Made by a program: the position numbers and the translations under genes. 64,000 nt of DNA, from NCBI GenBank assembly GCA_002269645.1, contig NIVC01000558.1, forward strand, positions 124,001-188,000. Reading direction: 5' to 3'. How positions within the stretch are numbered: position 1 is the stretch's first letter; each line of letters begins with the position of its first letter. Of this stretch, positions 14,558-64,000 are shown one piece after another. The notes beneath the pieces are model-generated. The model was not told where the DNA came from and did not search any database. It saw nothing but the letters and a program-made list of their open reading frames with translations. The DNA is from Macrostomum lignano. Taxonomy: Eukaryota.

Positions 14558-16518
14558 TGCTGTGGCTATAAGCCAAGCCAAGTCGAACCATAGACAAAAT
14601 GGTTCCCAGCACACCATACGCTTCTACGCGTAATGAGAGCAAGTTAGGCTTGCAGAAATAATAATAATAAAATACAAAAAGCAAGAGCCGAAGATCGGCT
14701 AGTTAATTTAAGTTCAAGACTTGTTCATTTGATTTATCATTAAACAAACAAAAGACACAACAGTGGCGTCGCGAGCAGGATGGCACCACCAACACCGGCA
14801 GCTGAGAAAATGGCATCGCCAGTGAAGTCTGCAGCAAAGACGGTTACTAAGGATGGCAAAGTGCCACAGCCTGCGAGTCTGGAAGGAATCGGCCAAACTG
14901 CACAATTCCACCAGCCAATGATCGGAAACAACATGCTCAACATGATCGACATTGAGAAGCTCGAGGAAGGAAAGTCGTTTCCACGATGGATGGAACGCTT
15001 CACAGTTACGGCCAATCTCTGCAAATGGGGAGAGGAAGAAAAGGCGCAGATTTTGCTCATGCGTCTGTCTGCTGGTCTGTACGACACGCTGGCGGATCAT
15101 CTGGCTCCTACATTACCGAGCACAATGTCTTTCGAAGAGCTCAAAAAGGCGCTGAAGGAGATCCTGGTGCCTAAAACATATGTCCTGTCTGAACGGTACG
15201 CCTTTCAAAATGCCAAGAAGGACGCAAAAGAGGGCATTCGAGCATTCGCTGAGAGGCTGCTCAAAGCGTCGGATAAATGTGCATTTTGCAACAAGGAGGA
15301 ACGGCTCCGGGACCAATTCATCTGCGGACTGAATGACAAGGTCATCATAGCAAAGCTGCTAATCCAAGATTTTGAGGAGCTAACCTTCAAGGCTGCTGTG
15401 GCAAAAGCCGAGGCGTATGCGTCACTGAAGGACACACATATAATGCAGTCAGCGACGGCATCGAAAGCAGAAGGGATGGTCATGAAAATCGGCCGCTCAA
15501 AACCAACACTGTCAAAGCCGATCGCACCCAGAGGAGACAAGAAGTGCCCTCGTTGTGGTGGCAACCAGCATCCAAAGGCAGCATGTCCGGCTATGGGAAA
15601 AACCTGCAAGAGATGCGGTAAGCCAAACCACTTTCAAAAGGCATGTCGGTCAAGCTTATCCAGTCAACAGAACTTTGTGGCTGAGGATTCTGCACAAAGA
15701 GACATTTTGCACACTGACACTGGCAGAGAAGCGTCGTGCTCTACAGTGAAGCTGGCTTGTCAAGTAGAAGGCAAAATGCAATCCATAATCTGTCAGATTG
15801 ACACAGGAGCTTCGGTTTCAGTTTTGTCCAGCAAGCTGCGGTGGAAATTTGGAAAGCCAAAGTTGCGAGGCAGCACCTCGACTTTGGTGGGCTACACCGA
15901 CGGACACAAATTCGACCAATTGGGTTCATTGCCTGTCGTCACGGAATGGAAAGGAAGAAACATGAAGGTTACGTTTCAAGTAGTACGCTCAAACCGCAAC
16001 TTTGCATTGCTCGGACGAGATTTCATCAAATTCAATCCGGAATGCGTCTCTATTGGACATACAGAGATGAAGGATTCAGCTCCATTCAAGGCAAGCTTAC
16101 GATTAGTCGATGGCGCAGTGCCTAAGTACATCAAAGCGAGGCCTGTGCCATTCGCATTGCGCGAGCGTCTGAAATGCGAGATCGACAAGCTTGTGACTGA
16201 CGGAGTTATCGAGCAAGTTAGCTTTTCGCAGTGGGCGTCACCCATTGTGACTGTGCAAAAACCCAATGGCAGTCTCAGGATCTGTGTCGACTATAAGACG
16301 ACTATAAGTCAATCCAAAGCTACAGCAAGATAGCTACCCGTTGCCAACAGTTGAAAAAGCATTCGCAGCAGTGACAAATTGCAAATACTACCCGATTTTG
16401 GATCTCGAGAAGGCATATAACCAGGTGCACCTAGACGACTCTTCCAAGGATATCACCGTGATGTCTACACCATTCGGGAACTTCAGATACAACCGTCTTG
16501 TCTTCGGATTAAAGACTG
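14558..16518 (+). mobile_element. 3'-truncated Ty3/Gypsy LTR retrotransposon (Mag-like): putative 5' LTR ~14558-14762, PBS 14764-14779
   Basis: TG...AACA followed by PBS TGGCGTCGCGAGCAGG directly before the ATG. RT breaks off before the YxDD motif; no RNase H, integrase or 3' LTR. Confidence 0.85.
14780..16518 (+). pseudogene. Gag-protease-RT polyprotein (ORF 14780-16333; frameshift at ~16307, RT continues to ~16518)
   Basis: Gag LRDQFICGL. Tandem Zn knuckles CPRCGGNQHPKAAC / CKRCGKPNHFQKAC. Protease IDTGAS. RT WASPIVTVQKPNGSLRICVDYK, YPLP, LDLEKAYNQV, TPFGNFRYNRLVFGL. Confidence 0.9.
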
Positions 16519-20518: not shown

Positions 20519-23500
20519 CCCCTACAGTCACCATCCCTTCACTCACCATCCCTACAGTCACCATCCCTACAGTCACCATCCCTTCACTCACCATCCCTAC
20601 AGTCACCATCCCTACAGTCACCATCCCTTCACTCACCATCCTCTACAGTCACCATCCCTACAGTCACCATCCCTACAGTCACCATCCCTACAGTCACCAT
20701 CCCTACAGTCAGCATCCCTTCATTCACCATCCCTACAGTCCCCGTCCCTTCACTCACCATCCCTACAGTCATCATCCCTACAGTCACCATCCCTACAGTC
20801 ACCATTACTACAGTCACCATCCCTTCACTCACCATCCCTACAGTCACCATCCCTACAGTCAGCATCCCTACAGTCACCATCCCTTCACCCACCATCCCTA
20901 CAGTCACCATCCCTTCACCCACCATCCCTACAGTCACCATCCCTACAGTCACCATCCCTACAGTCACCATCCCTACAGTCACCATCCCTTCACTCACCAT
21001 CCCTACAGTCACCATCCCTGCAGTCACCATCCCTACAGTCACCATCCCTGCAGTCACCATCCCTGCAGTCACCATCCCTGCAGTCACCATCCCTACAGTC
21101 ACCATCCCTACAGTCACCATCCCTACAGTCAGCATTCCTACAGTCACCATCCCTTCACTCACCATCCCTACAGTCCCCGTCCCTGCAGTCACCATCCCTG
21201 CAGTCACCATCCCTACAGTCAGCATCCCTACAGTCAGCATCCCTACAGTCACCATCCCTGCAGTCACCATCCCTACAGTCACCATCCCTGCAGTCACCAT
21301 CCCTGCAGTCACCATCCCTGCAGTCACCATCCCTACAGTCACCATCCCTACAGTCACCATCCCTACAGTCACCATCCCTACAGTCACCATCCCTACAGTC
21401 ACCATCCCTGCAGTCACCATCCCTGCAGTCACCATCCCTGCAGTCACCATCCCTGCAGTCACCATCCCTGCAGTCACCATCCCTGCAGTCACCATCCCTG
21501 CAGTCACCATCCCTGCAGTCACCATCCCTGCAGTCACCATCCCTGCAGTCACCATCCCTACAGTCACCATCCCTACAGTCACCATCCCTGCAGTCACCAT
21601 CCCTGCAGTCACCATCCCTGCAGTCACCATCCCTGCAGTCACCATCCCTGCAGTCACCATCCCTACAGTCACCATCCCTGCAGTCACCATCCCTGCAGTC
21701 ACCATCCCTACAGTCACCATCCCTACAGTCACCATCCCTACAGTCACCATCCCTGCAGTCACCATCCCTGCAGTCACCATCCCTACAGTCACCATCCCTA
21801 CAGTCACCATCCCTACAGTCACCATCCCTACAGTCACCATCCCTACAGTCACCATCCCTACAGTCACCATCCCTACAGTCACCATCCCTACAGTCACCAT
21901 CCCTACAGTCACCATCCCTGCAGTCACCATCCCTGCAGTCACCATCCCTACAGTCACCATCCCTACAGTCACCATCCCTACAGTCACCATCCCTACAGTC
22001 ACCATCCCTACAGTCACCATCCCTACAGTCACCATCCCTACAGTCACCATCCCTACAGTCACCATCCCTACAGTCACCATCCCTACAGTCACCATCCCTA
22101 CAGTCACCATCCCTACAGTCACCATCCCTACAGTCACCATCCCTACAGTCACCATCCCTACAGTCACCATCCCTGCACCATCCCTACAGTCACCATCCCT
22201 ACAGTCACCATCCCTACAGTCACCATCCCTACAGTCAGCATCCCTACAGTCAGCATCCCTACAGTCACCATCCCTACAGTCACCATCCCTACAGTCACCA
22301 TCCCTACAGTCACCATCCCTACAGTCACCATCCCTACAGTCACCATCCCTACAGTCACCATCCCTACAGTCACCATCCCTACAGTCACCATCCCTACAGT
22401 CAGCATCCCTACAGTCACCATCCCTACAGTCACATCCCTACAGTCAGCATCCCTACAGTCACCATCCCTACAGTCACATCCCTACAGTCACCATCCCTAC
22501 AGTCACCATCCCTACAGTCACCATCCCTACAGTCACCATCCCTACAGTCACCATCCCTACAGTCACATCCCTACAGTCACCATCCCTACAGTCACCATCC
22601 CTACAGTCACCATCCCTACAGTCACCATCCCTACAGTCACCATCCCTACAGTCACCATCCCTACAGTCACCATCCCTACAGTCACCATCCCTACAGTCAC
22701 CATCCCTACAGTCACCATCCCTACAGTCACCATCCCTACAGTCACCATCCCTACAGTCACCATCCCTACAGTCACCATCCCTACAGTCACCATCCCTACA
22801 GTCACCATCCCTACAGTCACCATCCCTACAGTCACCATCCCTACAGTCACCATCCCTACAGTCACCATCCCTACAGTCACCATCCCTACAGTCACCATCC
22901 CTACAGTCAGCATCCCTACAGTCACCATCCCTACAGTCACCATCCCTACAGTCACCATCCCTACAGTCAGCATCCCTACAGTCACCATCCCTACAGTCAC
23001 CATCCCTACAGTCACCATCCCTACAGTCACCATCCCTACAGTCACCATCCCTACAGTCACCATCCCTACAGTCACCATCCCTACAGTCACCATCCCTACA
23101 GTCACCATCCCTACAGTCACCATCCCTACAGTCACCATCCCTACAGTCACCATCCCTACAGTCACCATCCCTACAGTCACCATCCCTACAGTCAGCATCC
23201 CTACAGTCACCATCCCTACAGTCACCATCCCTACAGTCACCATCCCTACAGTCAGCATCCCTACAGTCACCATCCCTACAGTCACCATCCCTACAGTCAC
23301 CATCCCTACAGTCACCATCCCTACAGTCACATCCCTACAGTCACCATCCCTACAGTCACCATCCCTACAGTCACCATCCCTACAGTCACCATCCCTACAG
23401 TCACCATCCCTACAGTCACCATCCCTACAGTCACCATCCCTACAGTCACCATCCCTACAGTCACCATCCCTACAGTCACCATCCCTACAGTCACCATCCC

Positions 23501-26500
23501 TACAGTCACCATCCCTACAGTCACCATCCCTACAGTCACCATCCCTACAGTCACCATCCCTACAGTCACCATCCCTACAGTCACCATCCCTACAGTCACC
23601 ATCCCTACAGTCACCATCCCTACAGTCACCATCCCTACAGTCACCATCCCTACAGTCACCATCCCTACAGTCACCATCCCTACAGTCACCATCCCTACAG
23701 TCACCATCCCTACAGTCACCATCCCTACAGTCACCATCCCTACAGTCACCATCCCTACAGTCACCATCCCTACAGTCACCATCCCTACAGTCACCATCCC
23801 TACAGTCACCATCCCTACAGTCACCATCCCTACAGTCACCATCCCTACAGTCACCATCCCTACAGTCACCATCCCTACAGTCACCATCCCTACAGTCACC
23901 ATCCCTACAGTCACCATCCCTACAGTCACCATCCCTACAGTCACCATCCCTACAGTCACCATCCCTACAGTCACCATCCCTACAGTCACCATCCCTACAG
24001 TCACCATCCCTACAGTCACCATCCCTACAGTCACCATCCCTACAGTCACCATCCCTACAGTCACCATCCCTACAGTCACCATCCCTACAGTCACCATCCC
24101 TACAGTCACCATCCCTACAGTCACCATCCCTACAGTCACCATCCCTACAGTCACCATCCCTACAGTCACCATCCCTACAGTCACCATCCCTACAGTCACC
24201 ATCCCTACAGTCACCATCCCTACAGTCACCATCCCTACAGTCACCATCCCTACAGTCACCATCCCTACAGTCACCATCCCTACAGTCACCATCCCTACAG
24301 TCACCATCCCTACAGTCACCATCCCTACAGTCACCATCCCTACAGTCACCATCCCTACAGTCACCATCCCTACAGTCACCATCCCTACAGTCACCATCCC
24401 TACAGTCACCATCCCTACAGTCACCATCCCTACAGTCACCATCCCTACAGTCACCATCCCTACAGTCACCATCCCTACAGTCACCATCCCTACAGTCACC
24501 ATCCCTACAGTCACCATCCCTACAGTCACCATCCCTACAGTCACCATCCCTACAGTCACCATCCCTACAGTCACCATCCCTACAGTCACCATCCCTACAG
24601 TCACCATCCCTACAGTCACCATCCCTACAGTCACCATCCCTACAGTCACCATCCCTACAGTCACCATCCCTACAGTCACCATCCCTACAGTCACCATCCC
24701 TACAGTCACCATCCCTACAGTCACCATCCCTACAGTCACCATCCCTACAGTCACCATCCCTACAGTCACCATCCCTACAGTCACCATCCCTACAGTCACC
24801 ATCCCTACAGTCACCATCCCTACAGTCACCATCCCTACAGTCACCATCCCTACAGTCACCATCCCTACAGTCACCATCCCTACAGTCACCATCCCTACAG
24901 TCACCATCCCTACAGTCACCATCCCTACAGTCACCATCCCTACAGTCACCATCCCTACAGTCACCATCCCTACAGTCACCATCCCTACAGTCACCATCCC
25001 TACAGTCACCATCCCTACAGTCACCATCCCTACAGTCACATCCCTACAGTCACCATCCCTACAGTCACCATCCCTACAGTCACCATCCCTACAGTCACCA
25101 TCCCTACAGTCACCATCCCTACAGTCACCATCCCTACAGTCACCATCCCTACAGTCACCATCCCTACAGTCACCATCCCTACAGTCACCATCCCTACAGT
25201 CACCATCCCTACAGTCACCATCCCTACAGTCACCATCCCTACAGTCACCATCCCTACAGTCACCATCCCTACAGTCACCATCCCTACAGTCACCATCCCT
25301 ACAGTCACCATCCCTACAGTCACCATCCCTACAGTCACCATCCCTACAGTCACCATCCCTACAGTCACCATCCCTACAGTCACCATCCCTACAGTCACCA
25401 TCCCTACAGTCACCATCCCTACAGTCACCATCCCTACAGTCACCATCCCTACAGTCACCATCCCTACAGTCACCATCCCTACAGTCACCATCCCTACAGT
25501 CACCATCCCTACAGTCACCATCCCTACAGTCACCATCCCTACAGTCACCATCCCTACAGTCACCATCCCTACAGTCACCATCCCTACAGTCACCATCCCT
25601 ACAGTCACCATCCCTACAGTCACCATCCCTACAGTCACCATCCCTACAGTCACCATCCCTACAGTCACCATCCCTACAGTCACCATCCCTACAGTCACAT
25701 CCCTACAGTCACCATCCCTACAGTCACCATCCCTACAGTCACCATCCCTACAGTCACCATCCCTACAGTCACCATCCCTACAGTCACCATCCCTACAGTC
25801 ACCATCCCTACAGTCACCATCCCTACAGTCACCATCCCTACAGTCACCATCCCTACAGTCACCATCCCTACAGTCACCATCCCTACAGTCACCATCCCTA
25901 CAGTCACCATCCCTACAGTCACCATCCCTACAGTCACCATCCCTACAGTCACCATCCCTACAGTCACCATCCCTACAGTCAGCATCCCTACAGTCACCAT
26001 CCCTACAGTCACCATCCCTACAGTCACCATCCCTACAGTCACCATCCCTACAGTCACCATCCCTACAGTCACCATCCCTACAGTCACCATCCCTACAGTC
26101 ACCATCCCTACAGTCACCATCCCTACAGTCACCATCCCTACAGTCACCATCCCTACAGTCACCATCCCTACAGTCACCATCCCTACAGTCACCATCCCTA
26201 CAGTCACCATCCCTACAGTCACCATCCCTACAGTCACCATCCCTACAGTCACCATCCCTACAGTCACCATCCCTACAGTCACCATCCCTACAGTCACCAT
26301 CCCTACAGTCACCATCCCTACAGTCACCATCCCTACAGTCACCATCCCTACAGTCACCATCCCTACAGTCACCATCCCTACAGTCACCATCCCTACAGTC
26401 ACCATCCCTACAGTCACCATCCCTACAGTCACCATCCCTACAGTCACCATCCCTACAGTCACCATCCCTACAGTCACCATCCCTACAGTCACCATCCCTA

Positions 26501-29500
26501 CAGTCACCATCCCTACAGTCACCATCCCTACAGTCACCATCCCTACAGTCACCATCCCTACAGTCACCATCCCTACAGTCACCATCCCTACAGTCACCAT
26601 CCCTACAGTCACCATCCCTACAGTCACCATCCCTACAGTCACCATCCCTACAGTCACCATCCCTACAGTCACCATCCCTACAGTCACCATCCCTACAGTC
26701 ACCATCCCTACAGTCACCATCCCTACAGTCACCATCCCTACAGTCACCATCCCTACAGTCACCATCCCTACAGTCACCATCCCTACAGTCACCATCCCTA
26801 CAGTCACCATCCCTACAGTCACCATCCCTACAGTCACCATCCCTACAGTCACCATCCCTACAGTCACCATCCCTACAGTCACCATCCCTACAGTCACCAT
26901 CCCTACAGTCACCATCCCTACAGTCACCATCCCTACAGTCACCATCCCTACAGTCACCATCCCTACAGTCACCATCCCTACAGTCACCATCCCTACAGTC
27001 ACCATCCCTACAGTCACCATCCCTACAGTCACCATCCCTACAGTCACCATCCCTACAGTCACCATCCCTACAGTCACCATCCCTACAGTCACCATCCCTA
27101 CAGTCACCATCCCTACAGTCACCATCCCTACAGTCACCATCCCTACAGTCACCATCCCTACAGTCACCATCCCTACAGTCACCATCCCTACAGTCACCAT
27201 CCCTACAGTCACCATCCCTACAGTCACCATCCCTACAGTCACCATCCCTACAGTCACCATCCCTACAGTCACCATCCCTACAGTCACCATCCCTACAGTC
27301 ACCATCCCTACAGTCACCATCCCTACAGTCACCATCCCTACAGTCACCATCCCTACAGTCACCATCCCTACAGTCACCATCCCTACAGTCACCATCCCTA
27401 CAGTCACCATCCCTACAGTCACCATCCCTACAGTCACCATCCCTACAGTCACCATCCCTACAGTCACCATCCCTACAGTCACCATCCCTACAGTCACCAT
27501 CCCTACAGTCACCATCCCTACAGTCACCATCCCTACACCATCCCTACAGTCACCATCCCTACAGTCACCATCCCTACAGTCACCATCCCTACAGTCACCA
27601 TCCCTACAGTCACCATCCCTACAGTCACCATCCCTACAGTCACCATCCCTACAGTCACCATCCCTACAGTCAGCATCCCTACAGTCACCATCCCTACAGT
27701 CACCATCCCTACAGTCACCATCCCTACAGTCACCATCCCTACAGTCACCATCCCTACAGTCACCATCCCTACAGTCAGCATCCCTACAGTCACATCCCTA
27801 CAGTCACATCCCTACAGTCACCATCCCTACAGTCACCATCCCTACAGTCACCATCCCTACAGTCACCATCCCTACAGTCACCATCCCTACAGTCAGCCAT
27901 CCCTACAGTCACCATCCCTACAGTCACCATCCCTACAGTCACATCCCTACAGTCAGCATCCCTACAGTCACCATCCCTACAGTCACCATCCCTACAGTCA
28001 CCATCCCTACAGTCACCATCCCTACAGTCACCATCCCTACAGTCACCATCCCTACAGTCACCATCCCTACAGTCACCATCCCTACAGTCACCATCCCTAC
28101 AGTCACCATCCCTACAGTCACCATCCCTACAGTCACCATCCCTACAGTCACCATCCCTACAGTCACCATCCCTACAGTCACCATCCCTACAGTCACCATC
28201 CCTACAGTCACCATCCCTACAGTCACCATCCCTACAGTCACCATCCCTACAGTCACATCCCTACAGTCACCATCCCTACAGTCAGCATCCCTACAGTCAC
28301 CATCCCTACAGTCACCATCCCTACAGTCACCATCCCTACAGTCAGCATCCCTACAGTCACCATCCCTACAGTCACCATCCCTACAGTCACCATCCCTACA
28401 GTCACCATCCCTACAGTCACCATCCCTACAGTCACCATCCCTACAGTCACCATCCCTACAGTCACCATCCCTACAGTCAGCATCCCTACAGTCACCATCC
28501 CTACAGTCACCATCCCTACAGTCACCATCCCTACAGTCACCATCCCTACAGTCACCATCCCTACAGTCACCATCCCTACAGTCACCATCCCTACAGTCAC
28601 CATCCCTACAGTCACCATCCCTACAGTCACATCCCTACAGTCACCATCCCTACAGTCACCATCCCTACAGTCACCATCCCTACAGTCACCATCCCTACAG
28701 TCAGCATCCCTACAGTCACCATCCCTACAGTCACCATCCCTACAGTCACCATCCCTACAGTCAGCATCCCTACAGTCACCATCCCTACAGTCACCATCCC
28801 TACAGTCACCATCCCTACAGTCAGCATCCCTACAGTCACCATCCCTACAGTCACATCCCTACAGTCACCATCCCTACAGTCACCATCCCTACAGTCACCA
28901 TCCCTACAGTCACATCCCTACAGTCACCATCCCTACAGTCACCATCCCTACAGTCACCATCCCTACAGTCACCATCCCTACAGTCACCATCCCTACAGTC
29001 ACCATCCCTACAGTCACCATCCCTACAGTCACCATCCCTACAGTCACCATCCCTACAGTCACCATCCCTACAGTCACCATCCCTACAGTCACCATCCCTA
29101 CAGTCACCATCCCTACAGTCACCATCCCTGCAGTCACCATCCCTACAGTCACCATCCCTACAGTCACCATCCCTACAGTCACCATCCCTACAGTCACCAT
29201 CCCTACAGTCACCATCCCTACAGTCACCATCCCTGCAGTCACCATCCCTACAGTCACCATCCCTACAGTCACCATCCCTACAGTCACCATCCCTACAGTC
29301 ACCATCCCTACAGTCACCATCCCTACAGTCACCATCCCTACAGTCACCATCCCTGCAGTCACCATCCCTACAGTCACCATCCCTACAGTCACCATCCCTA
29401 CAGTCACCATCCCTACAGTCACCATCCCTACAGTCAGCATCCCTACAGTCACCATCCCTACAGTCACCATCCCTACAGTCACCATCCCTACAGTCACCAT

Positions 29501-31459
29501 CCCTACAGTCAGCATCCCTACAGTCACCATCCCTACAGTCACCATCCCTACAGTCACCATCCCTACAGTCAGCATCCCTACAGTCACCATCCCTACAGTC
29601 ACCATCCCTGCAGTCACCATCCCTACAGTCAGCATCCCTACAGTCACCATCCCTACAGTCAGCATCCCTACAGTCACCATCCCTACAGTCACCATCCCTA
29701 CAGTCACCATCCCTACAGTCAGCATCCCTACAGTCACCATCCCTACAGTCACCATCCCTGCAGTCACCATCCCTACAGTCACCATCCCTACAGTCACCAT
29801 CCCTACAGTCACCATCCCTACAGTCACCATCCCTACAGTCACCATCCCTGCAGTCACCATCCCTACAGTCACCATCCCTACAGTCACCATCCCTACAGTC
29901 ACCATCCCTACAGTCACCATCCCTACAGTCACCATCCCTACAGTCACCATCCCTACAGTCACCATCCCTACAGTCACCATCCCTACAGTCACCATCCCTA
30001 CAGTCACCATCCCTACAGTCACCATCCCTACAGTCACCATCCCTACAGTCACCATCCCTACAGTCACCATCCCTACAGTCACCATCCCTACAGTCACCAT
30101 CCCTACAGTCACCATCCCTACAGTCACCATCCCTACAGTCACCATCCCTGCAGTCACCATCCCTACAGTCACCATCCCTACAGTCACCATCCCTACAGTC
30201 ACCATCCCTACAGTCACCATCCCTGCAGTCACCATCCCTGCAGTCACCATCCCTACAGTCACCATCCCTACAGTCACCATCCCTACAGTCACCATCCCTA
30301 CAGTCACCATCCCTACAGTCACCATCCCTACAGTCACCATCCCTACAGTCACCATCCCTACAGTCACCATCCCTGCAGTCACCATCCCTACAGTCACCAT
30401 CCCTACAGTCACCATCCCTACAGTCACCATCCCTGCAGTCACCATCCCTGCAGTCACCATCCCTACAGTCACCATCCCTACAGTCACCATCCCTACAGTC
30501 ACCATCCCTACAGTCACCATCCCTACAGTCACCATCCCTACAGTCACCATCCCTACAGTCACCATCCCTACAGTCACCATCCCTACAGTCACCATCCCTG
30601 CAGTCACCATCCCTACAGTCACCATCCCTACAGTCAGCATCCCTACAGTCACCATCCCTGCAGTCACCATCCCTGCAGTCACCATCCCTACAGTCACCAT
30701 CCCTACAGTCACCATCCCTACAGTCAGCATCCCTACAGTCACCATCCCTACAGTCAGCATCCCTACAGTCACCATCCCTACAGTCACCATCCCTACAGTC
30801 ACCATCCCTGCAGTCACCATCCCTGCAGTCACCATCCCTACAGTCACCATCCCTACAGTCAGCATCCCTACAGTCACCATCCCTACAGTCACCATCCCTG
30901 CAGTCACCATCCCTACAGTCTCCGTCCCTACAGTCACCATCCTTACAGTCACCATCCCTGCAGTCACCATCCCTACAGTCACCATCCCTACAGTCAGCAT
31001 CCCTACAGTCACCATCCCTGCAGTCACCATCCCTGCAGTCACCATCCCTACAGTCACCATCCCTACAGTCACCATCCCTACAGTCAGCATCCCTACAGTC
31101 ACCATCCCTACAGTCAGCATCCCTACAGTCACCATCCCTACAGTCACCATCCCTACAGTCACCATCCCTGCAGTCACCATCCCTGCAGTCACCATCCCTA
31201 CAGTCACCATCCCTACAGTCACCATCCCTGCAGTCACCATCCCTACAGTCACCATCCCTACAGTCACCATCCCTGCAGTCACCATCCCTACAGTCACCAT
31301 CCCTACAGTCACCATCCCTACAGTCACCATCCCTACAGTCACCATCCCTGCAGTCACCATCCCTACAGTCACCATCCCTACAGTCACCATCCCTACAGTC
31401 ACCATCCCTGCAGTCACCATCCCTACAGTCACCATCCCTACAGTCACCATCCCTTCACT
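20519..31459. repeat. 10.9-kb satellite of a 15-bp unit CAGTCACCATCCCTA (~730 copies)
   Basis: Direct. The 3,600-aa ORFs in all three + frames arise because the unit has no + strand stop codon. Confidence 0.99.
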
Positions 31460-44456: not shown

Positions 44457-52271
<7,815 letters not shown>

Positions 52272-52386
52272 GCAGTCTCTCGACTTTGAGACACCGCCTG
52301 TCCGGCTTGCTGCTTTCAACCTGTGATGTGGTGAGTGGATAATCAAAGAAGCATTCAAAGATAGACAGAATTTCTGCTCTCCACTG

Positions 52387-53077
<691 letters not shown>

Positions 53078-53809
53078 CATCCGCCTACACTAGTTATCAC
53101 AAAAAACTGGACCCGTAGTACGCCAACGCGCCTCAATTTAGCCACACGAAATCCGATATCCAACTCAATTTCATGGACGGGTGGAACTACAACTCCACCA
53201 ACTCCCCCCGCCCGTCAATTCACTCTCTCTTTATCTGTCTCTCTGTTATCTCAGTCCTCACCTTATCTCATGCCCAGCCTCAGTCAGAATGGCATGAGCT
53301 TAGCATTAGCATACAGACTGCTCACCCTCCGGCTCACACCGCGCACTATTCTCAGCATCAAAATGCTCAGCTCTAAAATATTCCACATCCGCGTTCAAAG
53401 AAGCTGGCACGGATAATGGCGGCTATCAGATCGCCAGCGCGTCTAATGCCTGTCACTCTTCTAAGCGTGGCAGTTTGTGCGGGGCGGAGCTCAGCTGCAC
53501 TGATGAGGATAATTAAATGGGGACAGCTGGGGATCGTCGGGGGATCGGCATCGGCAAGAGACGATGGAAGCGGACAACAGATGGACGCGATCAAAGGCGT
53601 GAAGACTGAGTTGCATTTAGTGCCTACTAAAGGTTGAGGTTTAGCGCTTAAAGTGGAAAAAGTGGAAATAGTGAAAACCGTAACTATTGCTAATAACCAT
53701 TTTCTATAGTGAATGCACACAAACAATTTTACTTTTTATAATGGGAATTATATACTGTGAGTTATAGTACCTGTCAGTATGTCTGTTTCAGTGTCGATCT
53801 GTCTTTTTG

Positions 53810-56277
53810 TCTGTCTGTCTTAATGCCAATCTGTCTTAGTGTCAGTCTGTCTTAATGTAAATCTGTCTTAGTGTCAGTCTGTCTTAATGTCAGTCTGTTT
53901 TAGTGTCAGTCTGTTTTAGTGTCAGTCTGTCCTAATGTCAATCTTTCTTAGTGTCAGTCTGTCTTAATGTCAATCTGTCTTAGTGTCAGTCTTTCTTAGT
54001 GTCAGTCTGTTTTAGTGTCAGTCTGTCCTAATGTCAATCTGCCTTAGTGTCAGTCTGTCCTAATGTCAATCTGTCTTAGTGTCAGTCTGTCTTAGTGTCA
54101 GTCTGTCCTAATGTCAATCTGCCTTAGTGTCAGTCTGTCCTAATGTCAATCTGTCTTAGTGTCAGTCTGTCTTAGTGTCAGTCTGTCCTAATGTCAATCT
54201 TTCTTAGTGTCAGTCTGTCTTAATGTCAATCTGTCTTAGTGTCAGTCTGTCTTAGTGTCAGTCTGTTTTAGTGTCAGTCTGTCCTAATGTCAATCTGCCT
54301 TAGTGTCAGTCTGTCCTAATGTCAATCTGTCTTAGTGTCAGTCTGTCTTAGTGTCAGTCTGTTTTAGTGTCAGTCTGTCCTAATGTCAATCTGCCTTAGT
54401 GTCAGTCTGTCCTAATGTCAATCTGTCTTAGTGTCAGTCTGTCTTAGTGTCAGTCTGTCCTAATGTCAATCTTTCTTAGTGTCAGTCTGTCTTAATGTCA
54501 ATCTGTCTTAGTGTCAGTCTGTCTTAGTGTCAGTCTGTCTTAGTGTCAGTCTGTCTTAGTGTCAGTCAGTTTTAGTGTCAATCTGCCTTAGTGTCAGTCT
54601 GTCTTAATGTCAATCTGTCTTAGTGTCAATCTGTCTTAGTGTCAGTCTGTCTTAATGTCAATCTGTCTTAGTGTCTGTCTGTCTTAGTGTCAGTCTGTTT
54701 TAGTGTCAATCTGCCTTAGTGTCAGTCTGTCTTAGAGTCAGTTTGTCTTAATGTCAGTCTGTCTTAGTGCCAGTCTGTCTTAGTGTCAGTCTGTTTTAGC
54801 GTCAATCTGCCTTAGTGTCAATTTGCCTTAGTGTCAGTCTGTCTTAATGTCAATCCCTCTTAGTGTCAGTCTGTCTTAGTGTCAGTCTGTTTTAGCGTCA
54901 ATCTGCCTTAGTGTCAATTTGCCTTAGTGTCAGTCTGTCTTAATGTCAATCCCTCTTAGTGTCAGTCTGTCTTAATGTCAGTCTGTCTTAGTGCCAGTCT
55001 GTCTTAGTGTCAATTTGCCTTAGTGTCAGTCTGTCTTAATGTCAATCCCTCTTAGTGTCAGTCTGTCTTAATGTCAGTCTGTCTTAGTGCCAGTCTGTCT
55101 TAGTGTCAGTCTGTTTTAGCGTCAATCTGCCTTAGTGTCAATCTGTCTTAATGTCAATCTGTCTTAGTGTCAATCTGTCTTAGTGTCAGTCTGTCTTAGT
55201 GTCAGTCAGTTTTAGTGTCAATCTGCCTTAGTGTCAGTCTGTCTTAATGTCAATCTGTCTTAGTGTCAGTCTGTCTTAGTGTCAGTCAGTTTTAGTGTCA
55301 ATCTGCCTTAGTGTCAGTCTGTCTTAATGTCAATCCCTCTTAGTGTCAGTCTGTCTTAGTGTCAGTCTGTTTTAGCGTCAATCTGCCTTAGTGTCAATTT
55401 GCCTTAGTGTCAGTCTGTCTTAATGTCAATCCCTCTTAGTGTCAGTCTGTCTTAATGTCAGTCTGTCTTAGTGCCAGTCTGTCTTAGTGTCAATTTGCCT
55501 TAGTGTCAGTCTGTCTTAATGTCAATCCCTCTTAGTGTCAGTCTGTCTTAATGTCAGTCTGTCTTAGTGTCAGTCTGTCTTAGTGTCAGTCTGTTTTAGT
55601 GTCAATCTGCCTTAGTGTCAGTCTGTCTTAATGTCAATCTGTCTTAGTTTCAGTCTGTCTTAGTGTCAGTCTGTCTTAGAGTCAGTCTGTCTTAATGTCA
55701 ATCTGTCTTAGTGTCAATCTGTCTTAGTGTCAGTCTGTCTTAATGTCAATCTGTCTTAGTGTCAGTCTGTCTTAATGTCAATCTGTCTTAGTGTCAATCT
55801 GTCTTAGTGTCAGTCTGTCTTAATGTCAGTCTGTCTTAGTGTCAGTCTGTCTTAGTGTCAGTCTGTCTTAGTGTCAGTCTGTCTTAGTGTCAGTCTGTCT
55901 TAGTGTCAGTCTGTTTTAGTGTCAATCTGCCTTAGTGTCAGTCTGTCTTAATGTCAATCTGTCTTAGTGTCAGTCTGTCTTAATGTCAATCTGTCTTAGT
56001 GTCAATCTGTCTTAGTGTCAGTCTGTCTTAATGTCAGTCTGTCTTAGTGTCAGTCTGTCTTAGTGTCAGTCTGTCTTAGTGTCAGTCTGTCTTAGTGTCA
56101 GTCTGTCTTAGTGTCAGTCTGTTTTAGTGTCAATCTGCCTTAGTGTCAGTCTGTCTTAATGTCAATCTGTCTTAGTGTCAGTCTGTCTTAGTGTCAGTCA
56201 GTTTTAGTGTCAGTCTGTCTTAGTGTCAGTCAGTTTTAGTGTCAGTCTGTCTTAGTGTCAGTCTGTCTGACACTAAG
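53810..56277. repeat. 16-bp satellite (TGTCAGTCTGTCTTAG), ~150 copies, ending in an inverted unit
   Basis: Direct. Confidence 0.97.
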
Positions 56278-57149
56278 TGGTCAGCGAAACGGGCAATGAT
56301 TTGCTCACTTCTTTTTTGACGGCCTTGATTCACACGGCAATGGATTCACACACAGTAGACGATTAAATTCACGGATGCAAAGTATTAAGGCAATAAGTTC
56401 TACCGTTTCAAATAGGCTATTCTTAGCATAAAGTAAGAGAATATGAACTTTTCCCTTTATTAGATATATTCCGATATGTTGTCAATAGCGCATCTTTTGG
56501 AGCTGAAAGCCTCTTCAGCCTCTTTAGCGTCGCATTCCCTTCTTTAGTGAGAGAGTCAGATTTCCGTCATCTTCTTATCCGGGAAATCAGCTTCCCAGCC
56601 TCATCTTGATGCTAAGGGGGTGTGAGAAACACGGATCCCAGTTCGCACCAAGATTATGTTGTTGCCTGCCTGCCTGCCTGCCTGCCTGTCTGTCTTCCTA
56701 ATGACAACTGCTGCTTCGTCTAGAAGCAAGTTTATTTCTCTTTTCTTTGAAAAATTTCCCTTGGGCCAAGTCGGGACGAGTCTGTGGGAATCCGGTTTAA
56801 ACATTCCCAGCTATCTGGAGGGACTGCATAAGTGTCTGAAATCTGGAACTTCTGGGGAAAATTGGGAGAGAAAGAATCGCTCGCTTTGGCACAGTTTCTG
56901 GCCCCACTTACAAATAGAGAGAGAGGGAGGATGAAGTTCGATACCACGGAGCACTGCGCATAGCGAAGATCAAATTAGCGAGGCCCCGCCCACTTTCCTG
57001 ATGGCGGCCTCGACTGCCGCAAGCACCGGGTGGGGAAAAGTGTAACTTTTAACTAGGGAGTCTGTTATTACAGAAGTGGATGGATTGCCCTGTGTGTTAG
57101 CTTATAGGGCAGTATGACAGATATGGGCTATGGGGCCAAAGGATGCTTT

Positions 57150-57690
57150 TATGATCAAGGATGTGTGTACTAACTAATGATGCTTAATGATCGAGGATGC
57201 ATGTACTATCTGATGATGCCGAATGATCAAGGATGCACGTACTATCTGATGATGCCGAATGATCAAGGATGTATGTAATATCTAAGGATGCTTAATGATC
57301 AAGGATGTGTGTACTAACTAATGATGCTTAATGATCAAGGATGTGTGTAATAACCAAGGATGCTTAATGATCAAGGATGTGTGTACTAACTAATGATGCT
57401 TAATGATTAGGGATGTGTGTACTAACTAATGATGCTTAATGATCAAGGATGTGTGTACTAACTAATGATGCTTAATGATCAAGGATGTGTGTACTAACTA
57501 TTGATGCTTAATGATCGAGGATGTATGTAATTTCAAATGATGCCTACTGATCAAGGATGAATGTAATATCTAAGGACGCCTAATGATCAAGGATGTACAT
57601 GTATGTAATAGCTAGGGACGCTTAATGATCAAGGATGTATGCAATAAGTGTATCTAAGGACGCTTAGTGATCAAGGTTGTATCTAATAAC
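57150..57690. repeat. 36-bp minisatellite (ATGATCAAGGATGTGTGTACTAACTAATGATGCTTA), ~14 copies
   Basis: Direct. Confidence 0.92.
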
Positions 57691-58680
57691 TAAGAACGTC
57701 TAATAATAACCACAAAATACGTCTATTATGATCAGGGAATGTCTCTATTTACCTATGGTGAACAGGACCTACAGATGATATATTTCGAGCATCAATGACT
57801 TCTGCATGTCTACGCTTAACAATAGTCTACGACTTATACTTAATCCTGTATTCCCTAACAACGAGTTGCAGCTGTTTATATCTAAGAAAAGTCTGCATGC
57901 TAAAATCTCAAAAAAGAGTGAAATGTGGGCAGGCTTGCCAAGCATATTCATTTGCTGCGCACTTTGCCAAACAAATTGGACGAGAGCCACTTACACGATG
58001 CTACACTCGACAGCTTCTTGACAGAGGCTTATCGAGACAAGAAATCCTTGAAGACTTTCTCAAGTCTCAGCCTTGGAGACACGTATTGAGCTTTCTTCTA
58101 CTCCCTTCAGCCGGTCTCTCCTTGCTGCGCTGCACTTTCTACCCTCCTGAAACAGCAGGTAGAGGGGCGGGGAGAAAGGATCAGGTAGAAAGAAGCCGAG
58201 CCGCCACGGAAATTGTCACCGGCGGCAGGGTCGTGAGGCTGCGGCAGAAAAAGCAAATGCAAAGAAAGACAGATCCGCGATGCCGGGTTTCTGTCTTCGC
58301 CTCTTATTTTGCTTGGCTCCGCCGGAGCTGCCGCTCAGCGCCGCTTTCAAGGTGAGGTCAGACTGGGGCAGCTCCGGAATCGCATTCTCGGCATTGGGGA
58401 TCTCGGCTGGGAGTGGGATCTGTGACGCCAGCTCAGGCAGTTGGAAATAGGAGGCGTGGCGTCCGCGATGGGATCACTTTTATCCCGTCTGTCTGCTCCG
58501 CTTCTATGCCATGCCCGCGCCTTCCAATCCAGTTTCCTCCAGTCCAGGACTCGCGGTTCCTGTCCAATCACATAGCAGCTGCAGAGGCTTGCGGAATCCA
58601 AAGTAGCTGCACTTTTTAGTGTGGTTTCCACCTATGTATGCATTAAGTAGCTATTGACTATATGTAGATACGTGTACTAC

Positions 58681-58965
<285 letters not shown>

Positions 58966-60279
58966 GATCTATCGTTCTGCATACTTATCCACCTACAGCC
59001 ATATCCTAGAATTCTACTCCGACACAATCTGTGTAACAGGAGTTCTGACACGTGTTCAATAAGGCACGTTTTACTTTCTCTATCAGTTACTCCTTCAAGC
59101 GAGAAGTCGCTCTCTCAGAAGACGAGCCCACAGCGTAAGCCCTGCTGCTTCGTCGCCCCACCCCAGCAGCTGTGTGGCTGCAGCGGCACCTGAGCGCGTG
59201 AAAAGCGCAGCCCTGCAACAGCTTTGCCCCATTTGCTGCTCAGTCAGAGTTTGCAGCAGTCACACTTCTCGGGTCTTCAGTGTTTAAAGAGGGGGAGAAG
59301 GAGGGGAAGGAGAAGAATGATGAGGAGAGCGGACAAGAAGTGCCAAAGGAAATGAAGAAAAATTTCAGATAAATATTATACCATGAAACAGAAGAATTAT
59401 ATAACTTGCTGTGAGACAGGAATCTCACATCAAGAAAGCAAGTATCATTGATAATGTGTCCTATAAGAATAAAACACACAGAGTACAGGACCGCTAAGAC
59501 CTCAGCAGCATCATACTGATTCCCATCCCCAGATACAGAGCTCCACTCGCAGCTCAGCCAAACTAACACTGCACACTGGCGCTGATTTGTTTGAACCAAA
59601 ATGAAGCCAAATAGCGCACTTTCTTCCCTTTACTGGGGCTTTGGTGTTCGGCTGGGGGGATTAGCTGGGGTTGCTGTTGTCGCATTAACAAAATGATGAT
59701 GGATTATGATGCGGCAGCTGCACTTGCATCGGGCTGCTGGAGTTGGGACTAGGGCTTGACTGCACTGACCATCGCGTGTGCTCACACCGCATTCTCGGCT
59801 CAGCTCTCAACGCTCCTCACTTATGCTGCAGCAGTGGGTGAGGGTGCAGCGGGGGCAGCTGTTCTGCTTGATTGATTAAAACTGGTCCTGAAGGACAAGA
59901 AAATTGAGGACGAGGCTCTCTCTGATGGAAGTCCGATTTAGTTTCTCTCAAGAAGCCTCCGCCTGTCCCTCCACTGCTCTGCAACGCCACTGCAGGGAGT
60001 CTGAGAGACAGAATCAAATAAAATAAAAAAGAAAACTAGATAAAGGCAAGGGCTGCTTCTTTCTTGTTGGACTTTTTCTATCTAGAGAAGCGGCAGCAGG
60101 AGCAGCGCTGTTACGACTGCCATTTCTTAGAAAGCCCCTCCTTGTTCCAATTGGAGTGGTCTAGGGTCCCCCGACTGTTTGATTCAGTTGAAATAAATTT
60201 TCTTTTGTCTTATAGAGAAGCATGATGTAGTAGATGGTATTTGAATCTAAAAATATTCATGCGGCACGAGGAGGCGGGG

Positions 60280-60698: not shown

Positions 60699-63600
60699 CT
60701 AGAAGGCCTGTGGTAAATCAGCCAGAAGACGCTCCTGTTGAAATCTTATCAGTTCTTTAGACGTTAGCTCGTGGCTTTGAATGCTTGTTTGAAATTTTCT
60801 AATCACCGATAGAGCCAGACTGTGATCTGAGCAGTATCGCATGGCAGTGAGCAGTTCCTGAATGTCTGCTTCGTCGCGCAGAAGCAGACCCAGAAGCCAA
60901 GCGTTCCGAGCCTCGGCGCTTTTGACTCGCAGCTCGCAACTCAGACAAAGCAGCAGGCAATCAAAGTTTATATAGTAGTACGCGACGTAGTTCTCCATTC
61001 GCAGGGGAAACCAGGTGGCCAGATGATCCGGTAAGAGGCTGGATAGATCCGGCCGGTTTAGGAACATGAAGCTGAATCTCCAGGCTAGGTCGCTGTTGCA
61101 TAGCTGGTTGAATACTGCCGACTCCCCTGACCCTTCTGCGGGTCTAGAAGCGAATTCCTTAATGCCTCTGCTTACTATGTGACCGTTGCAGTCCAACAAA
61201 ACATCAGAGGCGGCAACTGTATCGTTAAATTTCAGGCAGACCAGGGCCCTGAGGCTCTCGCGAGCTGATCTAGCACAGTCTGGCAACCTGCCAATCTTCT
61301 TCACCAGGGAGGCTTCGAATTCACGGCTAAAGTCAGGCACGACCAGAGATTCAAACGAATCTCTTACGATGTCATAGATGCTGTAATAATCGCGGAAGTG
61401 CAGCCCTGTTGAAAACTTTGGATCGATCTCTGGGAGAATAAGAAATGGGTGAAAATGAAACAAATTGTTTGACCCAATTTGGTAAAGGCTGTTTTTGAAG
61501 CTCATCAGAAGCTGGGGCAAGTGGTCGATCACGTCTCGAAGAACTTGCACGATCTCTTCAAAACTGCTGCGATCGGCACCCTTCAGATACAAAGCTGCAT
61601 CGCTCAAGAAGAAATGCTCCATGATTCGACCATCTGTATTGTCAGCGGAACGACTCGTCTCGACACTGTCCAACAGCATCTGCACCGATCGATGGATGAG
61701 TGTCATAAGGTTCTCCGGCTTCCACTGCTCTTCTGGTGTCTCTTCAAGCATTCGGAACGTGACCGTCTTCGCGTGATACGCCTTCAGACCGTGAACTCTG
61801 CGACCGATCACCTTCTTGACCAGAAACTTGAGCGTGACGAACAGCTGGCCCTGCAGAGTCGTGAGACTCCGTAGCAGGCGTCTCTCTAAGAAGGTGGTGC
61901 TCACTCGGAGCTGCTTGCCGGCTTGTCCAGGAGGTGCCGCGTGAACCACGTGACAGGGCGAGGCTTCGAGCTCGCTTGTGAGAGACTGCAGCACCGTTTG
62001 TGGGATGCTGGATTTGGCCAGTCGATGAGGCTGCAGCGGCCCGATTGGAGGATAGCAGCAGAGGCGACAGGCGCTCACGCGGTCCACAGCGGGTCGGAGA
62101 GTCGAACCGTTCTCTGGCCGGGCTGGGCTGGAAGCTGATTGAGGTTGGTAAATTACTGAAGACTATTATAACTTCGAGCTTTAGAGTTTCGAGATTAGAG
62201 AAATAAAAATATGCTTACCATATCCTTCACAGATTATATGACCGTTGTCATATTCCACAACTAGTTCAGAGTCAGGATCAGTGCACCTGCAGACATCTTT
62301 CAGGTGATAAATCCTTCCTGGTATGAGCTGCATCACGTCTATGTCGGATTCTGGGTCCGTTCTGCCATCCAAATGGCTGAGGCTGTTTCCCCAGCCTTCC
62401 GAGTAGCTGCCAACAACAAAAACTTCTTCATTGCGTAGGCGTTGTCTTAGTATGCGCTGCAGGACGTCTGCACACGAGCTCTGAAGGGCAGCTCGGGTCT
62501 GCTCAAAGCCAGCCTGCTGGAGGGAACTGTGCAGTTGCTGACTGAATTCTTCTTCGCTGAAATACGTACGAGAAATTGAAAGTGAAACTTGATGTGAATT
62601 TTCAGAGTAAAGGATATTTACTGTGCGGCTTTATTGAAGTTATATTACCTCAAGCTGGAACTGCTTTTATCAATTTGTGAAGGCATCGGCTCGTCTTGCA
62701 CAGTCCCAACATCTTCTGAATTATCCCTGTCAGATAGGGCCTTCTCAAGAAGTTCAGCTACTATTTTGTGCTTAAATTTTCTAGCCAAGTCTAAAGGTGT
62801 CTGGCCATCCCTGTCTGTTGCAGTGACATCAGCAAAGCATCGGAGCAGCGATTTAGTCGCTTCTGGATGTCCATTCTCAGCTGCGGCGTGCAGAGGTGTC
62901 TGCCCTGTAGTCGCTCTTGTCGTGTTGACATCGGCACCAGCGTGAATAAGACGCTCAATGGCTTTCCAATAACCGAACTGCGCTGCCAGAAAAATCGGCG
63001 AGCAACCATCGTTCTGCTTCGAATTCACTGGACTGCCTTGAGCTGCTTGAAGAAGCTCGTATAGAGTCGCTTGGTCGCCTCGCTGAGCAGTAATGTGCAG
63101 TGGAGTCTCTCCTGTCCTTGTTTGTGCATCCACTTTTGCTGCTCCAGAGCGCACTAGCAGCCTGGCCACTTCGCTGTGACCCTCTTGAGCGGCAATGTAA
63201 ATCGTTGACACGCCGTCATTGCGCTGATGATCAATGTTAGCCTGCGCTTCAACCAGAGCTTTGATAACTCTTTGATGGCCATTCTGTGCGGCGATGTAAA
63301 CTGGAGACGCACCGTCCACCTCTACAGTGTTGACGTCCGCCTGGGCTGCGATCAGGGCTCGCACTATTGCCAGATTTCCGTTCTGAGCCGCGGTGTGAAT
63401 CGGTTCGCAGCCGTTGCTTGCTTTGACGTTGGCATTGGCGCGGCTCTTGAGAAGCAGCTGAGTAATCTTGAGTTGTCCATTTTGAGCAGCAAAGTGCAAC
63501 GCTGTTTCACCTTTTTTGTTAGTAAGATTCACGTTGGCTGCCGCTTGAATAAGGCTAGCAACAACGCGAGCGTGACCTTCCTGAGTGGCTGCGAGCAGAG

Positions 63601-64000
63601 CAGAATTCCCGTTGGTTAGACAACGCCAGTCAAGGTCGACTCCAGCTCTGAGCAGCCGAGCGACAATCTTGGAGTGGCCATTTTGCGCTGCCATGTAGAT
63701 GGGGGTGCAGCCTGCCTCCTGTACAGGATTGAGGTCGGCTCCAGCGGCAATGAGTCGATCTACTACCGCCGTGTGGCCCTTGTCGCATGCGATATGCAGC
63801 GGCGCGTCGCCTGAGTCCCAGCGCGGCAGGTCGGCATTTGCACCGTTTTGAAGCAGCAGCTTGGCGACGCCCGCGTGCCCAAACTCGGCGGCCAGGAACA
63901 GCGGCGTGGCGCCGGCTTCTTGACGTCTATTGACATCGGCTTGAGCTCTCAGCAGCCAGTCGACCACTGCAACTTGACCAGTTGACGAGGCCAAATGAAG
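60699..64000 (-). CDS. Ankyrin-repeat-cGAS-like receptor (Mab-21/cGLR nucleotidyltransferase) fusion, 5'-partial, >=1041 aa; exons >64000-62649, 62556-62219, 62134-60699
   Basis: >=13 ankyrin repeats. Donor AG|GTAATA to acceptor TATTTCAG|C (92-nt intron, phase 2) and G|GTAAGC to CAATCAG|CT (84-nt intron, phase 1) keep one frame. NTase motif VVGSYSEG...SDIDVM, third Asp in VDRVSAC. Mab-21 lobe: LRVSTTFLERRLL, LKAYHAKTVTF, QW, HFFL. Confidence 0.85.

Follow-up and report, generated by a model that had tools for sequence, protein, structure and literature searches.

Near the 3′ end of the 64,000-nt stretch of Macrostomum lignano DNA analysed here (hereafter, the window), the minus strand carries three open reading frames, at 62645–63994 (449 aa), 62181–62372 (63 aa), and 60699–62087 (462 aa). 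The question raised by this locus is whether the three frames are pieces of a single gene that fuses an ankyrin-repeat array to the nucleotidyltransferase (NTase) of a cGAS-like receptor (cGLR), and, if so, whether the enzyme is likely to be active and what may control it.

Gene structure and splicing

The region covers the 3′-terminal 3.3 kb of an M. lignano protein-coding gene. When joined through two GT..AG introns of 92 and 84 nt, the three open reading frames form a single open frame of 1041 codons (assembled by script), which contains one stop only, the terminal TAG at 60699–60701; the other two frames contain 44–45 stops each. The frame runs open to base 64000, which places the N-terminus beyond the window, and the gene extends upstream of this position. 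Exon 1 runs to 62649 at its 3′ end, where it is followed by GTAATA, and encodes the ankyrin-repeat array in its 5′ part (62756–64000) and, at its end (62649–62755), an acidic, Ser-rich linker (..EKALSDRDNSEDVGTVQDEPMPSQIDKSSSSL) recognised in the translation and having no Pfam match. Intron 1 (62557–62648, GTAATA...TTTCAG, phase 2) contains, in frame, the TAA that ends the 449-aa open reading frame. Exon 2 (62219–62556, followed by GTAAGC) encodes the N-terminal spine helix and the first part of the NTase N-lobe, and is separated by intron 2 (62135–62218, GTAAGC...AATCAG, phase 1) from exon 3 (62134–60699). The first part of exon 3 (61497–62134) encodes the remainder of the NTase core together with the Mab-21_C helical lobe, as assigned by Pfam, Foldseek, and profile comparison, and its second part (60702–61496) encodes a family-specific C-terminal helical domain of ~265 aa, modelled with AlphaFold2 (AF2).

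Both introns are supported by the sequence itself, by the peptides spanning the junctions, and by a paralogous locus. The junction peptide of intron 1 (SSSSL/SEEEF, the slash marking the junction) is found in the public M. lignano protein models P0011 and P0012, and that of intron 2 (ICEGY/ASSPARPENG) in P0011. Model P0011 is 99% identical to the window protein, with 14 differing positions over 686 residues before its tail diverges, and extends upstream by only 11 residues (MFYIGDNSGAA), inside an ankyrin repeat. In the paralogue P0013 (~60% identical), which is encoded at a separate genomic locus (L001), the two homologous positions are occupied by GT..AG introns of 84 and 81 nt. Thus, the preliminary description was correct in splicing the three frames in phase, and the intron lengths and phases are those it had given. 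The three-exon gene with its ankyrin–NTase fusion is real, far beyond chance. In UniRef, the gene is represented only by a truncated 704-aa model, and the protein model most similar to the window protein, P0012, has no genomic place on record from which the missing 5′ end could be read. Within the window, tblastn detected neither a further copy nor a tandem paralogue, the only weak match being an unrelated ankyrin open reading frame at 17968–19725. The window is also rich in satellites and contains one retrotransposon fragment.

Ankyrin-repeat array

In the Pfam search of residues 1–450, 13 Ank stretches were identified (Ank_2, E = 1e-100; Ank, E = 4e-83), in agreement with the earlier count of at least 13 repeats. 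Together with the continuous spliced frame and the junctions recurring in the protein models and the paralogue, this places the repeats and the cGLR NTase on a single polypeptide chain. The nearest paralogues share ~50% identity in the NTase part versus only ~36% in the ankyrin part, a divergence that is hard to measure because the repeats align ambiguously.

Fold and active site of the nucleotidyltransferase

The NTase part comprises ~330 aa. Pfam Mab-21_C matches the last exon (61539–61802) with 24.1 bits, exactly at the gathering cut-off; the Pfam model of the Mab-21 NTase lobe gave no score on the window protein, and NTP_transf_2 reached only E = 0.13. A single-sequence phmmer search of the NTase part against the PDB sequences found cGAS only at E = 0.13, and a family profile, and then a bridging alignment, were needed. 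The family profile matched cGAS chains in the PDB at E = 2.4e-4. By hhalign, the family aligned with 32 Pfam-positive Mab-21 proteins over 301 columns (probability, 99.9%; E = 1.7e-33), and this bridging set in turn matched Sp-cGLR1 (E = 2.4e-35) and cGAS (about 1e-24). In the Foldseek search, with a medium-confidence AF2 model as the query, the best 20 matches were all cGAS (E = 2.7e-5; probability, 1.0; TM, 0.47), followed by MAB21L1, Sp-cGLR1, MB21D2, and MiD51/49. Foldseek, Pfam Mab-21_C, and hhalign therefore agree on the bilobal Mab-21/cGAS nucleotidyltransferase fold that had been read from the sequence.

With residue 1 set at the start of the NTase part, the window NTase contains GSYSEG (G50–S51; codons 62406–62411, exon 2), SDIDV (D72 and D74; D72-I-D74 codons 62337–62345, exon 2), and AVDRV, the last providing the third catalytic aspartate, D131 (codon 62082–62084, exon 3), in the context SPA..x12..VDRVSA..YP. 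An LRVSTTFLE motif also lies within the NTase core, in the part encoded by the first part of exon 3. The loop between GS and DxD consists of 20 residues and is about 9 residues longer than in mollusc-type relatives. Across 11 paralogues, GS, D72, D74, and D131 show conservation of 90% or more, all conserved family residues being intact in the window copy, and the GS..DxD signature is kept even in members only ~30% identical. In the hhalign alignment, the catalytic residues fall in the GS, SDxD, and DxVxA columns of the Pfam-positive Mab-21 proteins, with D131 aligned to the invariant Asp of the DxVxA column; the same columns sit on GS, EFD, and SVDLTL in the match of the bridging set to Sp-cGLR1/cGAS. 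The active-site pattern of [G/S]S, [D/E]h[D/E], and a third Asp is thus recognised at the sequence and profile level only, the AF2 model having pLDDT < 50 around the active site (residues 51–61, 80–99, and 111–132). At that level, the conservation among paralogues and the alignment to genuine cGLR columns support the earlier proposal of an intact GS/DxD/D set. The NTase core has a pI of 6.2, and no match to the zinc thumb motif H(X5)CC(X6)C was found across the whole protein. There is, however, a cluster of conserved residues, C90/C92/H107/C139, that might bind zinc.

C-terminal domain

In the preliminary description, the sequence following the active site had been taken as a Mab-21 helical lobe. 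Such a lobe is indeed present, as detected by Pfam Mab-21_C, but the last ~260 residues lie outside it and form a separate domain that had gone unnoticed. The AF2 model of this domain (pLDDT, 85; pTM, 0.85) is helical with a small β-sheet insert, and the domain is conserved in paralogues. A Foldseek search against the PDB gave nothing below E = 0.3, with only insignificant TPR-like and TRIF-NTD matches, and there was no Pfam match. Its identification as a degenerate form of the TPR tail of mollusc-type cGLRs was rejected by hhalign (probability, 0.2%). From the model and the sequence comparisons, the last ~260 residues are predicted to be a separate, family-specific domain with no known structural or sequence relative. 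It is not discussed in the text of Li et al. (PMC9980059) consulted here.

Paralogue family and comparison with known cGLRs

All matches in a word-indexed search (35/35) were from M. lignano. The profile search yielded 817 matches at E ≤ 1e-3 and 84 at E ≤ 1e-30 (clusters at 50% identity), and the strong matches that were looked up (E ≤ 1e-15) were all named M. lignano except one (P0084, from a JGI metagenome). N-terminal ankyrin repeats are present in most members; in at least 33 representatives, the N-terminal extension measures at least 260 aa and is ankyrin in nearly all. Other N-terminal modules (WSC and RING in P0081, and a homeodomain in P0105) look like products of merged gene models. 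Judging from these matches, the window gene is one paralogue of a very large expansion of ankyrin-fused cGLRs (ANK-cGLRs) found almost only in M. lignano.

The novelty implied for this architecture was overstated, since ANK-cGLR fusions, including those of M. lignano, had already been catalogued by Li et al. in 2023 (PMC9980059; Fig. 1C, Fig. S2A, and Table S2). Their Table S2 lists M. lignano cGLRs with Ank_2 (the catalogued fusions include PAA86972.1, PAA45980.1, PAA68676.1, PAA67649.1, PAA58690.1, and PAA68216.1), and ANK-cGLRs were also found in the coral Stylophora pistillata. These M. lignano proteins have the same architecture as the window protein, i.e., a Mab-21 NTase whose active site is intact, preceded by an N-terminal ankyrin part. 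The window gene is a different paralogue, none of the entries in their tables being seen to match it. Five M. lignano NTase domains were cloned in that study (Table S3, #89–93); they are 30–40% identical to the window NTase (E = 1e-44 to 1e-76) and share with it the signature GS[FY][AS][ED]GW[GA]N..SD[IV]D. None of the five is labelled among the 15 active enzymes. Because their expression involved neither the ankyrin part nor a known ligand, the missing label is weak evidence; neither ligand nor product was reported for ANK-cGLRs. The architecture has therefore been known in M. lignano since 2023, and this locus adds one more paralogue.

The closest relatives outside flatworms are cGLRs of the mollusc and annelid type (E = 1e-10 to 1e-15 to the family profile), exemplified by the Mytilus ‘cyclic GMP-AMP synthase’ VDI49266.1, a Lamellibrachia protein, and the oyster cGLRs of Li et al. 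They share with the window family the motif order GS..SDxD..GPA..DxVxA..WP..WR[IV]SFS..SYH.KT. Unlike the window protein, they are detected by both Pfam Mab-21 models, and a large insert separates their DxD strand from the strand bearing the third Asp. As an additional module they often carry a C-terminal TPR in place of an N-terminal ankyrin array, and their tail shows no homology to the flatworm C-terminal domain. Vertebrate cGAS and Sp-cGLR1 (PDB IDs: 4K97 and 8GJY) agree with the window protein in the bilobal Mab-21 NTase fold and in the set of catalytic residues, but are only 13–16% identical to it. The window protein has neither zinc thumb nor basic N-terminal tail, has an acidic core, and contains the additional ankyrin and C-terminal domains. 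With the zinc thumb motif absent and a core pI of 6.2, the protein does not qualify as an orthologue of vertebrate-type cGAS. MAB21L1/2 and MiD49/MiD51, which lack cGAS-type catalysis, have the same fold at a lower Foldseek rank. Mab21L1/2/3 are predicted to lack a functional active site (Li et al., PMC9980059); the active-site residues of the window protein are present and conserved, and its assignment to the developmental MAB21L1/2 type was rejected.

Alternative explanations

Based on the above evidence, we consider it probable, at about 60%, that the gene is a member of the expanded ANK-cGLR family encoding a putatively competent NTase in an ankyrin-regulated innate receptor. It is very improbable that the gene model is an artefact, with the open reading frames left unspliced, or the gene a dead duplicate in a repeat-rich region. 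Satellites and the retrotransposon fragment fill the window, and M. lignano has many near-identical copies of the gene, such as that represented by P0011; nevertheless, 1041 codons free of internal stops, canonical splice sites, junctions shared with public models, intron positions kept in a paralogue, and the full set of intact family residues all speak against both possibilities. A non-enzymatic Mab-21 scaffold is an unlikely but more serious alternative, in which the NTase fold would serve nucleotide binding or protein assembly, as in MAB21L1 or MiD49/MiD51, and the ankyrin repeats would make the protein an adaptor. The highly divergent N-lobe, undetected by the Pfam Mab-21 model, the lengthened GS–DxD loop, the presence of MAB21L1 and MiD51/49 among the Foldseek matches, and the five paralogous NTase domains cloned without being labelled as active are consistent with such a scaffold. 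However, cGAS outranks MAB21L1 and the MiD proteins in the fold search, the cloned constructs had neither the ankyrin part nor an activating ligand, and nearly all paralogues, even at ~30% identity, retain GS, the two Asp residues of DxD, and the third Asp, which is difficult to account for unless catalysis is under selection.

Even if the NTase is catalytic, it might act as a conventional nucleic-acid sensor, with dsRNA or dsDNA bound to the NTase as in cGAS or Drosophila cGLR1 and the ankyrin repeats serving only for localisation or regulation. Every ligand named for cGLRs in the literature considered is a double-stranded nucleic acid, and the nearest relatives outside flatworms are the cGLR-type proteins of molluscs and annelids. 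Nucleic-acid-sensing cGLRs are more positively charged (Li et al., PMC9980059), and the acidic NTase core argues against this mode of sensing, weakly, as pI reflects a binding surface only roughly; the absence of a zinc thumb and the pairing, across the expansion, of the NTase with an ankyrin array that has diverged further are likewise weak arguments. The greater divergence of the ankyrin array suggests that specificity lies outside the NTase, and we regard direct nucleic-acid sensing as rather doubtful.

Proposed function

In the preferred reading, that of an ankyrin-regulated receptor enzyme, the NTase is predicted to be catalytically competent and, once switched on, would produce a nucleotide second messenger, with a cyclic dinucleotide as the likeliest product. 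Regulation or recognition would fall to the ankyrin solenoid, perhaps together with the C-terminal domain, keeping the enzyme off until a partner binds, and the diversification of the paralogues could provide a repertoire of specificities in innate immunity. The acidic NTase core without a zinc thumb would weakly disfavour triggering by a nucleic acid bound in the manner of cGAS. The preliminary description had gone on to propose a sensor of protein ligands that signals to STING, and the protein may be such a sensor. A literature search for a cGAS or STING of M. lignano found nothing specific; Table S5 of Li et al. 2023 (PMC9980059) does not include M. lignano, and Culbertson and Levin 2023 (PMC10732462) mention neither flatworms nor ankyrin. 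The planarian S. mediterranea has neither cGAS nor STING, and the loss of STING in other flatworms means that the M. lignano ANK-cGLRs could use a different receptor. That these proteins may together serve as an innate receptor repertoire, with hypervariable ankyrin solenoids recognising non-nucleic-acid (protein) ligands, a non-STING receptor relaying the signal, and the C-terminal domain providing oligomerisation or output, is, as a whole, a distinctly long shot.

Significance

M. lignano is a tractable laboratory flatworm, amenable to RNAi and transgenesis. In its phylum, cGLRs have been lost in most lineages (Li et al., PMC9980059). For ANK- or TPR-fused cGLRs, the literature considered here names no ligand, product, or receptor for any member. 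The present locus contributes one paralogue and a confidently folded C-terminal domain having no relative, and leaves the known biology of cGLRs unchanged. With its dozens of paralogues, M. lignano would be a reasonable system for studying the role of the repeat modules appended to these enzymes.

Gene structure and splicing

The gene under study, ANK-cGLR, which encodes ankyrin repeats fused to a cGAS-like nucleotidyltransferase (NTase), occupies positions 60699–64000 of the minus strand, where the three open reading frames (ORFs) listed in the preliminary description (449, 63, and 462 amino acids) are indeed present. By sequence reading and scripted joining, exon 1 (from the window edge at 64000 to 62649) is separated from exon 2 (62556–62219) by a 92-nt intron lying between 62649 and 62556 (GTAATA...TTTCAG, phase 2), and a second intron of 84 nt between 62219 and 62134 (GTAAGC...AATCAG, phase 1) leads to exon 3 (62134–60699), which terminates with TAG. 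The spliced exons comprise 1041 codons with a single stop at the end, the other two frames containing 44–45 stops each. The frame is still open at 64000, and the N-terminus therefore lies beyond the window. Two independent lines of evidence back the proposed in-frame joining through two introns. The junction peptides SSSSL/SEEEF and ICEGY/ASSPARPENG (slashes marking the junctions) are exactly present in the public Macrostomum lignano protein models P0011 (99% identity) and P0012, and the locus of the paralogue P0013 (GCA_002269645.1, NIVC01001272.1; ~60% identity to the window protein) has two GT..AG introns of 84 and 81 nt at homologous positions, similar in size to those of the window gene. 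ANK-cGLR is a real gene, and its earlier annotation was correct.

NTase fold and active site

The only Pfam match in the NTase part is Mab-21_C, at 24.1 bits, exactly the gathering score. The predicted secondary structure runs from a helix (residues 20–41, counted from the first residue of the NTase part) through a strand (46–49) to Gly50–Ser51, with Asp72-Ile-Asp74 at the beginning of strand 74–84 and Asp131 at the beginning of strand 132–138, an order of elements canonical for polymerase-β-type NTases. An AF2 model built with 11 paralogues in the alignment was of medium quality (pLDDT, 68.6; pTM, 0.69) and poor near the active site. In the comparison with cGAS suggested earlier, Foldseek placed cGAS chains at all of ranks 1–20 in the PDB for this medium-quality model (E = 2.7e-5; probability, 1.0; TM-score, ~0.47), followed by MAB21L1, Sp-cGLR1, MB21D2, and MiD51/49.

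Because single-sequence and family-profile searches reached cGAS through the helical lobe only, the catalytic residues were compared through a bridging alignment of 32 Pfam-positive Mab-21 proteins. The family alignment matched this set by hhalign over 301 columns (probability, 99.9%; E = 1.7e-33), placing Gly50–Ser51 on GS, Asp72/Asp74 on SDxD, and Asp131 on DxVxA. The bridging profile in turn matched Sp-cGLR1 (E = 2.4e-35) and cGAS (~1e-24), its catalytic columns aligning with GS, EFD, and SVDLTL of Sp-cGLR1. In comparison with the bridging set, the M. lignano family has a GS–DxD loop longer by ~9 residues and lacks the large insert preceding the third-Asp strand. Across 11 paralogues, GS, Asp72, Asp74, and Asp131 reach a conservation of 90% or more, and the signature GS[FY][SA][ED]GW[GA]N...SD[IV]D is found in dozens of family members; the same signature is kept in the five M. 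lignano proteins that Li et al. list, which are only 30–40% identical to the window NTase. Since the catalytic columns are shared with Sp-cGLR1 and cGAS through the bridging set and conserved among paralogues, the active site is intact at the sequence level, as the GS, DxD, and third-Asp core read from the DNA had indicated.

The cGAS-type zinc-thumb motif is absent from the window protein. A cluster of Cys90, Cys92, His107, Cys139, and Cys174 (NTase residues 90–174; ~61950–62290, minus strand), whose residues are either invariant across paralogues or kept in 90% or more of them, sits in the N-lobe in a low-confidence region of the model, and might be a family-specific metal site in place of the missing thumb.

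Appended domains

Thirteen Pfam Ank stretches cover residues 1–450 (Ank_2, E = 1e-100), consistent with the at least 13 repeats counted previously, and are followed by an acidic, serine-rich linker. At the other end, the Mab-21 lobe described before was recovered through Mab-21_C, but the last ~260–265 residues (60702–61496, minus strand) lie outside that lobe and form a separate domain that had been overlooked. Modeled alone with 18 paralogues, it is confidently predicted to be mainly helical with a small sheet (pLDDT, 85; pTM, 0.85), and it is conserved among M. lignano paralogues. Pfam returned no match, the PDB no significant one (best E = 0.3, TPR-like or TRIF-NTD), and comparison with the TPR tails of mollusc-type cGLRs detected no homology. 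This orphan domain is the sole new element of the locus.

Distribution of the family

All 35 matches in a word-indexed protein search came from M. lignano, a free-living flatworm. When 1.84 billion representatives were searched exhaustively with a profile, 817 proteins passed E ≤ 1e-3, 84 of them with E ≤ 1e-30; the strong matches looked up by name (E ≤ 1e-15) were from M. lignano except for one JGI metagenome protein (P0084). Mollusc and annelid proteins, e.g., a Mytilus 'cyclic GMP-AMP synthase' and a Lamellibrachia protein, occupy the tier of E ~1e-10 to 1e-15; both Pfam Mab-21 models score on these proteins, several of which carry C-terminal TPRs. In at least 33 cluster representatives, a complete NTase part is preceded by 260–950 additional N-terminal residues, which contain ankyrin repeats in nearly all cases. 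The 64-kb window holds one ANK-cGLR copy. The P0013 gene (L001 1–7685, NIVC01001272.1) has a myosin heavy-chain gene ~2.3 kb upstream, and no tandem array within 10 kb joins it to further members of the family.

Li et al. (2023; PMC9980059) defined cGLRs across animals, 87% of them stand-alone enzymes and some with ankyrin or TPR modules. Table S2 of that study assigns Ank_2 domains to the M. lignano cGLRs PAA67649, PAA58690, PAA68676, PAA86972, PAA45980, and PAA68216, and Table S3 lists five M. lignano NTase domains (#89–93) cloned for a biochemical screen, the column naming the 15 active enzymes being blank for all five. The architecture was thus already catalogued in M. lignano, and the window gene is a new paralogue of this kind.

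Other elements of the window

Tandem repeats make up a large share of the window, consistent with the repeat-rich genome of M. lignano. One is an ~11-kb satellite (20520–31454) of ~730 copies of the 15-nt unit CCCTACAGTCACCAT (97% matches), with extreme strand asymmetry (GC skew, ~−0.74) and spurious ORFs of ~3600–3750 amino acids in all three forward frames. Other arrays have units of 30 nt (1–1046 and 2150–4045), 23/46 nt (47560–48473), 32 nt (53781–56268), and 36 nt (57142–57596), and microsatellites of (ACT)n, (CTGT)n, and (CTAT)n lie at 46042–46705, 52384–53077, and 58677–58973, respectively. The ORF at 14780–16333 (plus strand; 517 amino acids) is probably an LTR retrotransposon fragment: it encodes a pair of CCHC zinc knuckles, an aspartyl protease of gag type (DUF7083 and gag-asp_proteas, both weak in Pfam), and an apparent reverse transcriptase start. 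On the minus strand, an ankyrin-repeat ORF of 585 amino acids (17968–19725) contains ten near-identical 33-residue units, encoded by a 99-nt tandem array (18589–19614; 86% matches), and then canonical ankyrin repeats at the C-terminus; it is without a Mab-21 part, and its identity to the ANK-cGLR ankyrin array is only ~24%.

Proposed mechanism

The best-supported reading is that of a predicted catalytically competent cGLR whose activity would be gated by the appended modules. A pseudogene is a very unlikely rival for a gene with one uninterrupted spliced frame. Less well supported than the main reading is a non-catalytic scaffold, against which the main argument is the strict conservation of the catalytic residues over a deep paralogue tree. 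A conventional nucleic-acid sensor is likewise a less well supported rival; nucleic-acid-sensing cGLRs are more positively charged (Li et al., PMC9980059), and the NTase core here is acidic (pI 6.2, a crude proxy for the binding surface). Between the nearest paralogues, the ankyrin parts are ~36% identical and the NTase parts ~50%, although the ankyrin repeats align ambiguously. The more divergent ankyrin part, the acidic core, and the absent zinc thumb, each a weak hint, faintly suggest ligand recognition outside the NTase domain.

As to downstream signaling, a 2026 study found the planarian Schmidtea mediterranea to be without cGAS and STING; the cGLR/STING census of Li et al. (PMC9980059) did not include M. 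lignano, and literature searches on STING in this species returned nothing. ANK-cGLR may sense a protein ligand, produce a cyclic dinucleotide, and signal through STING.
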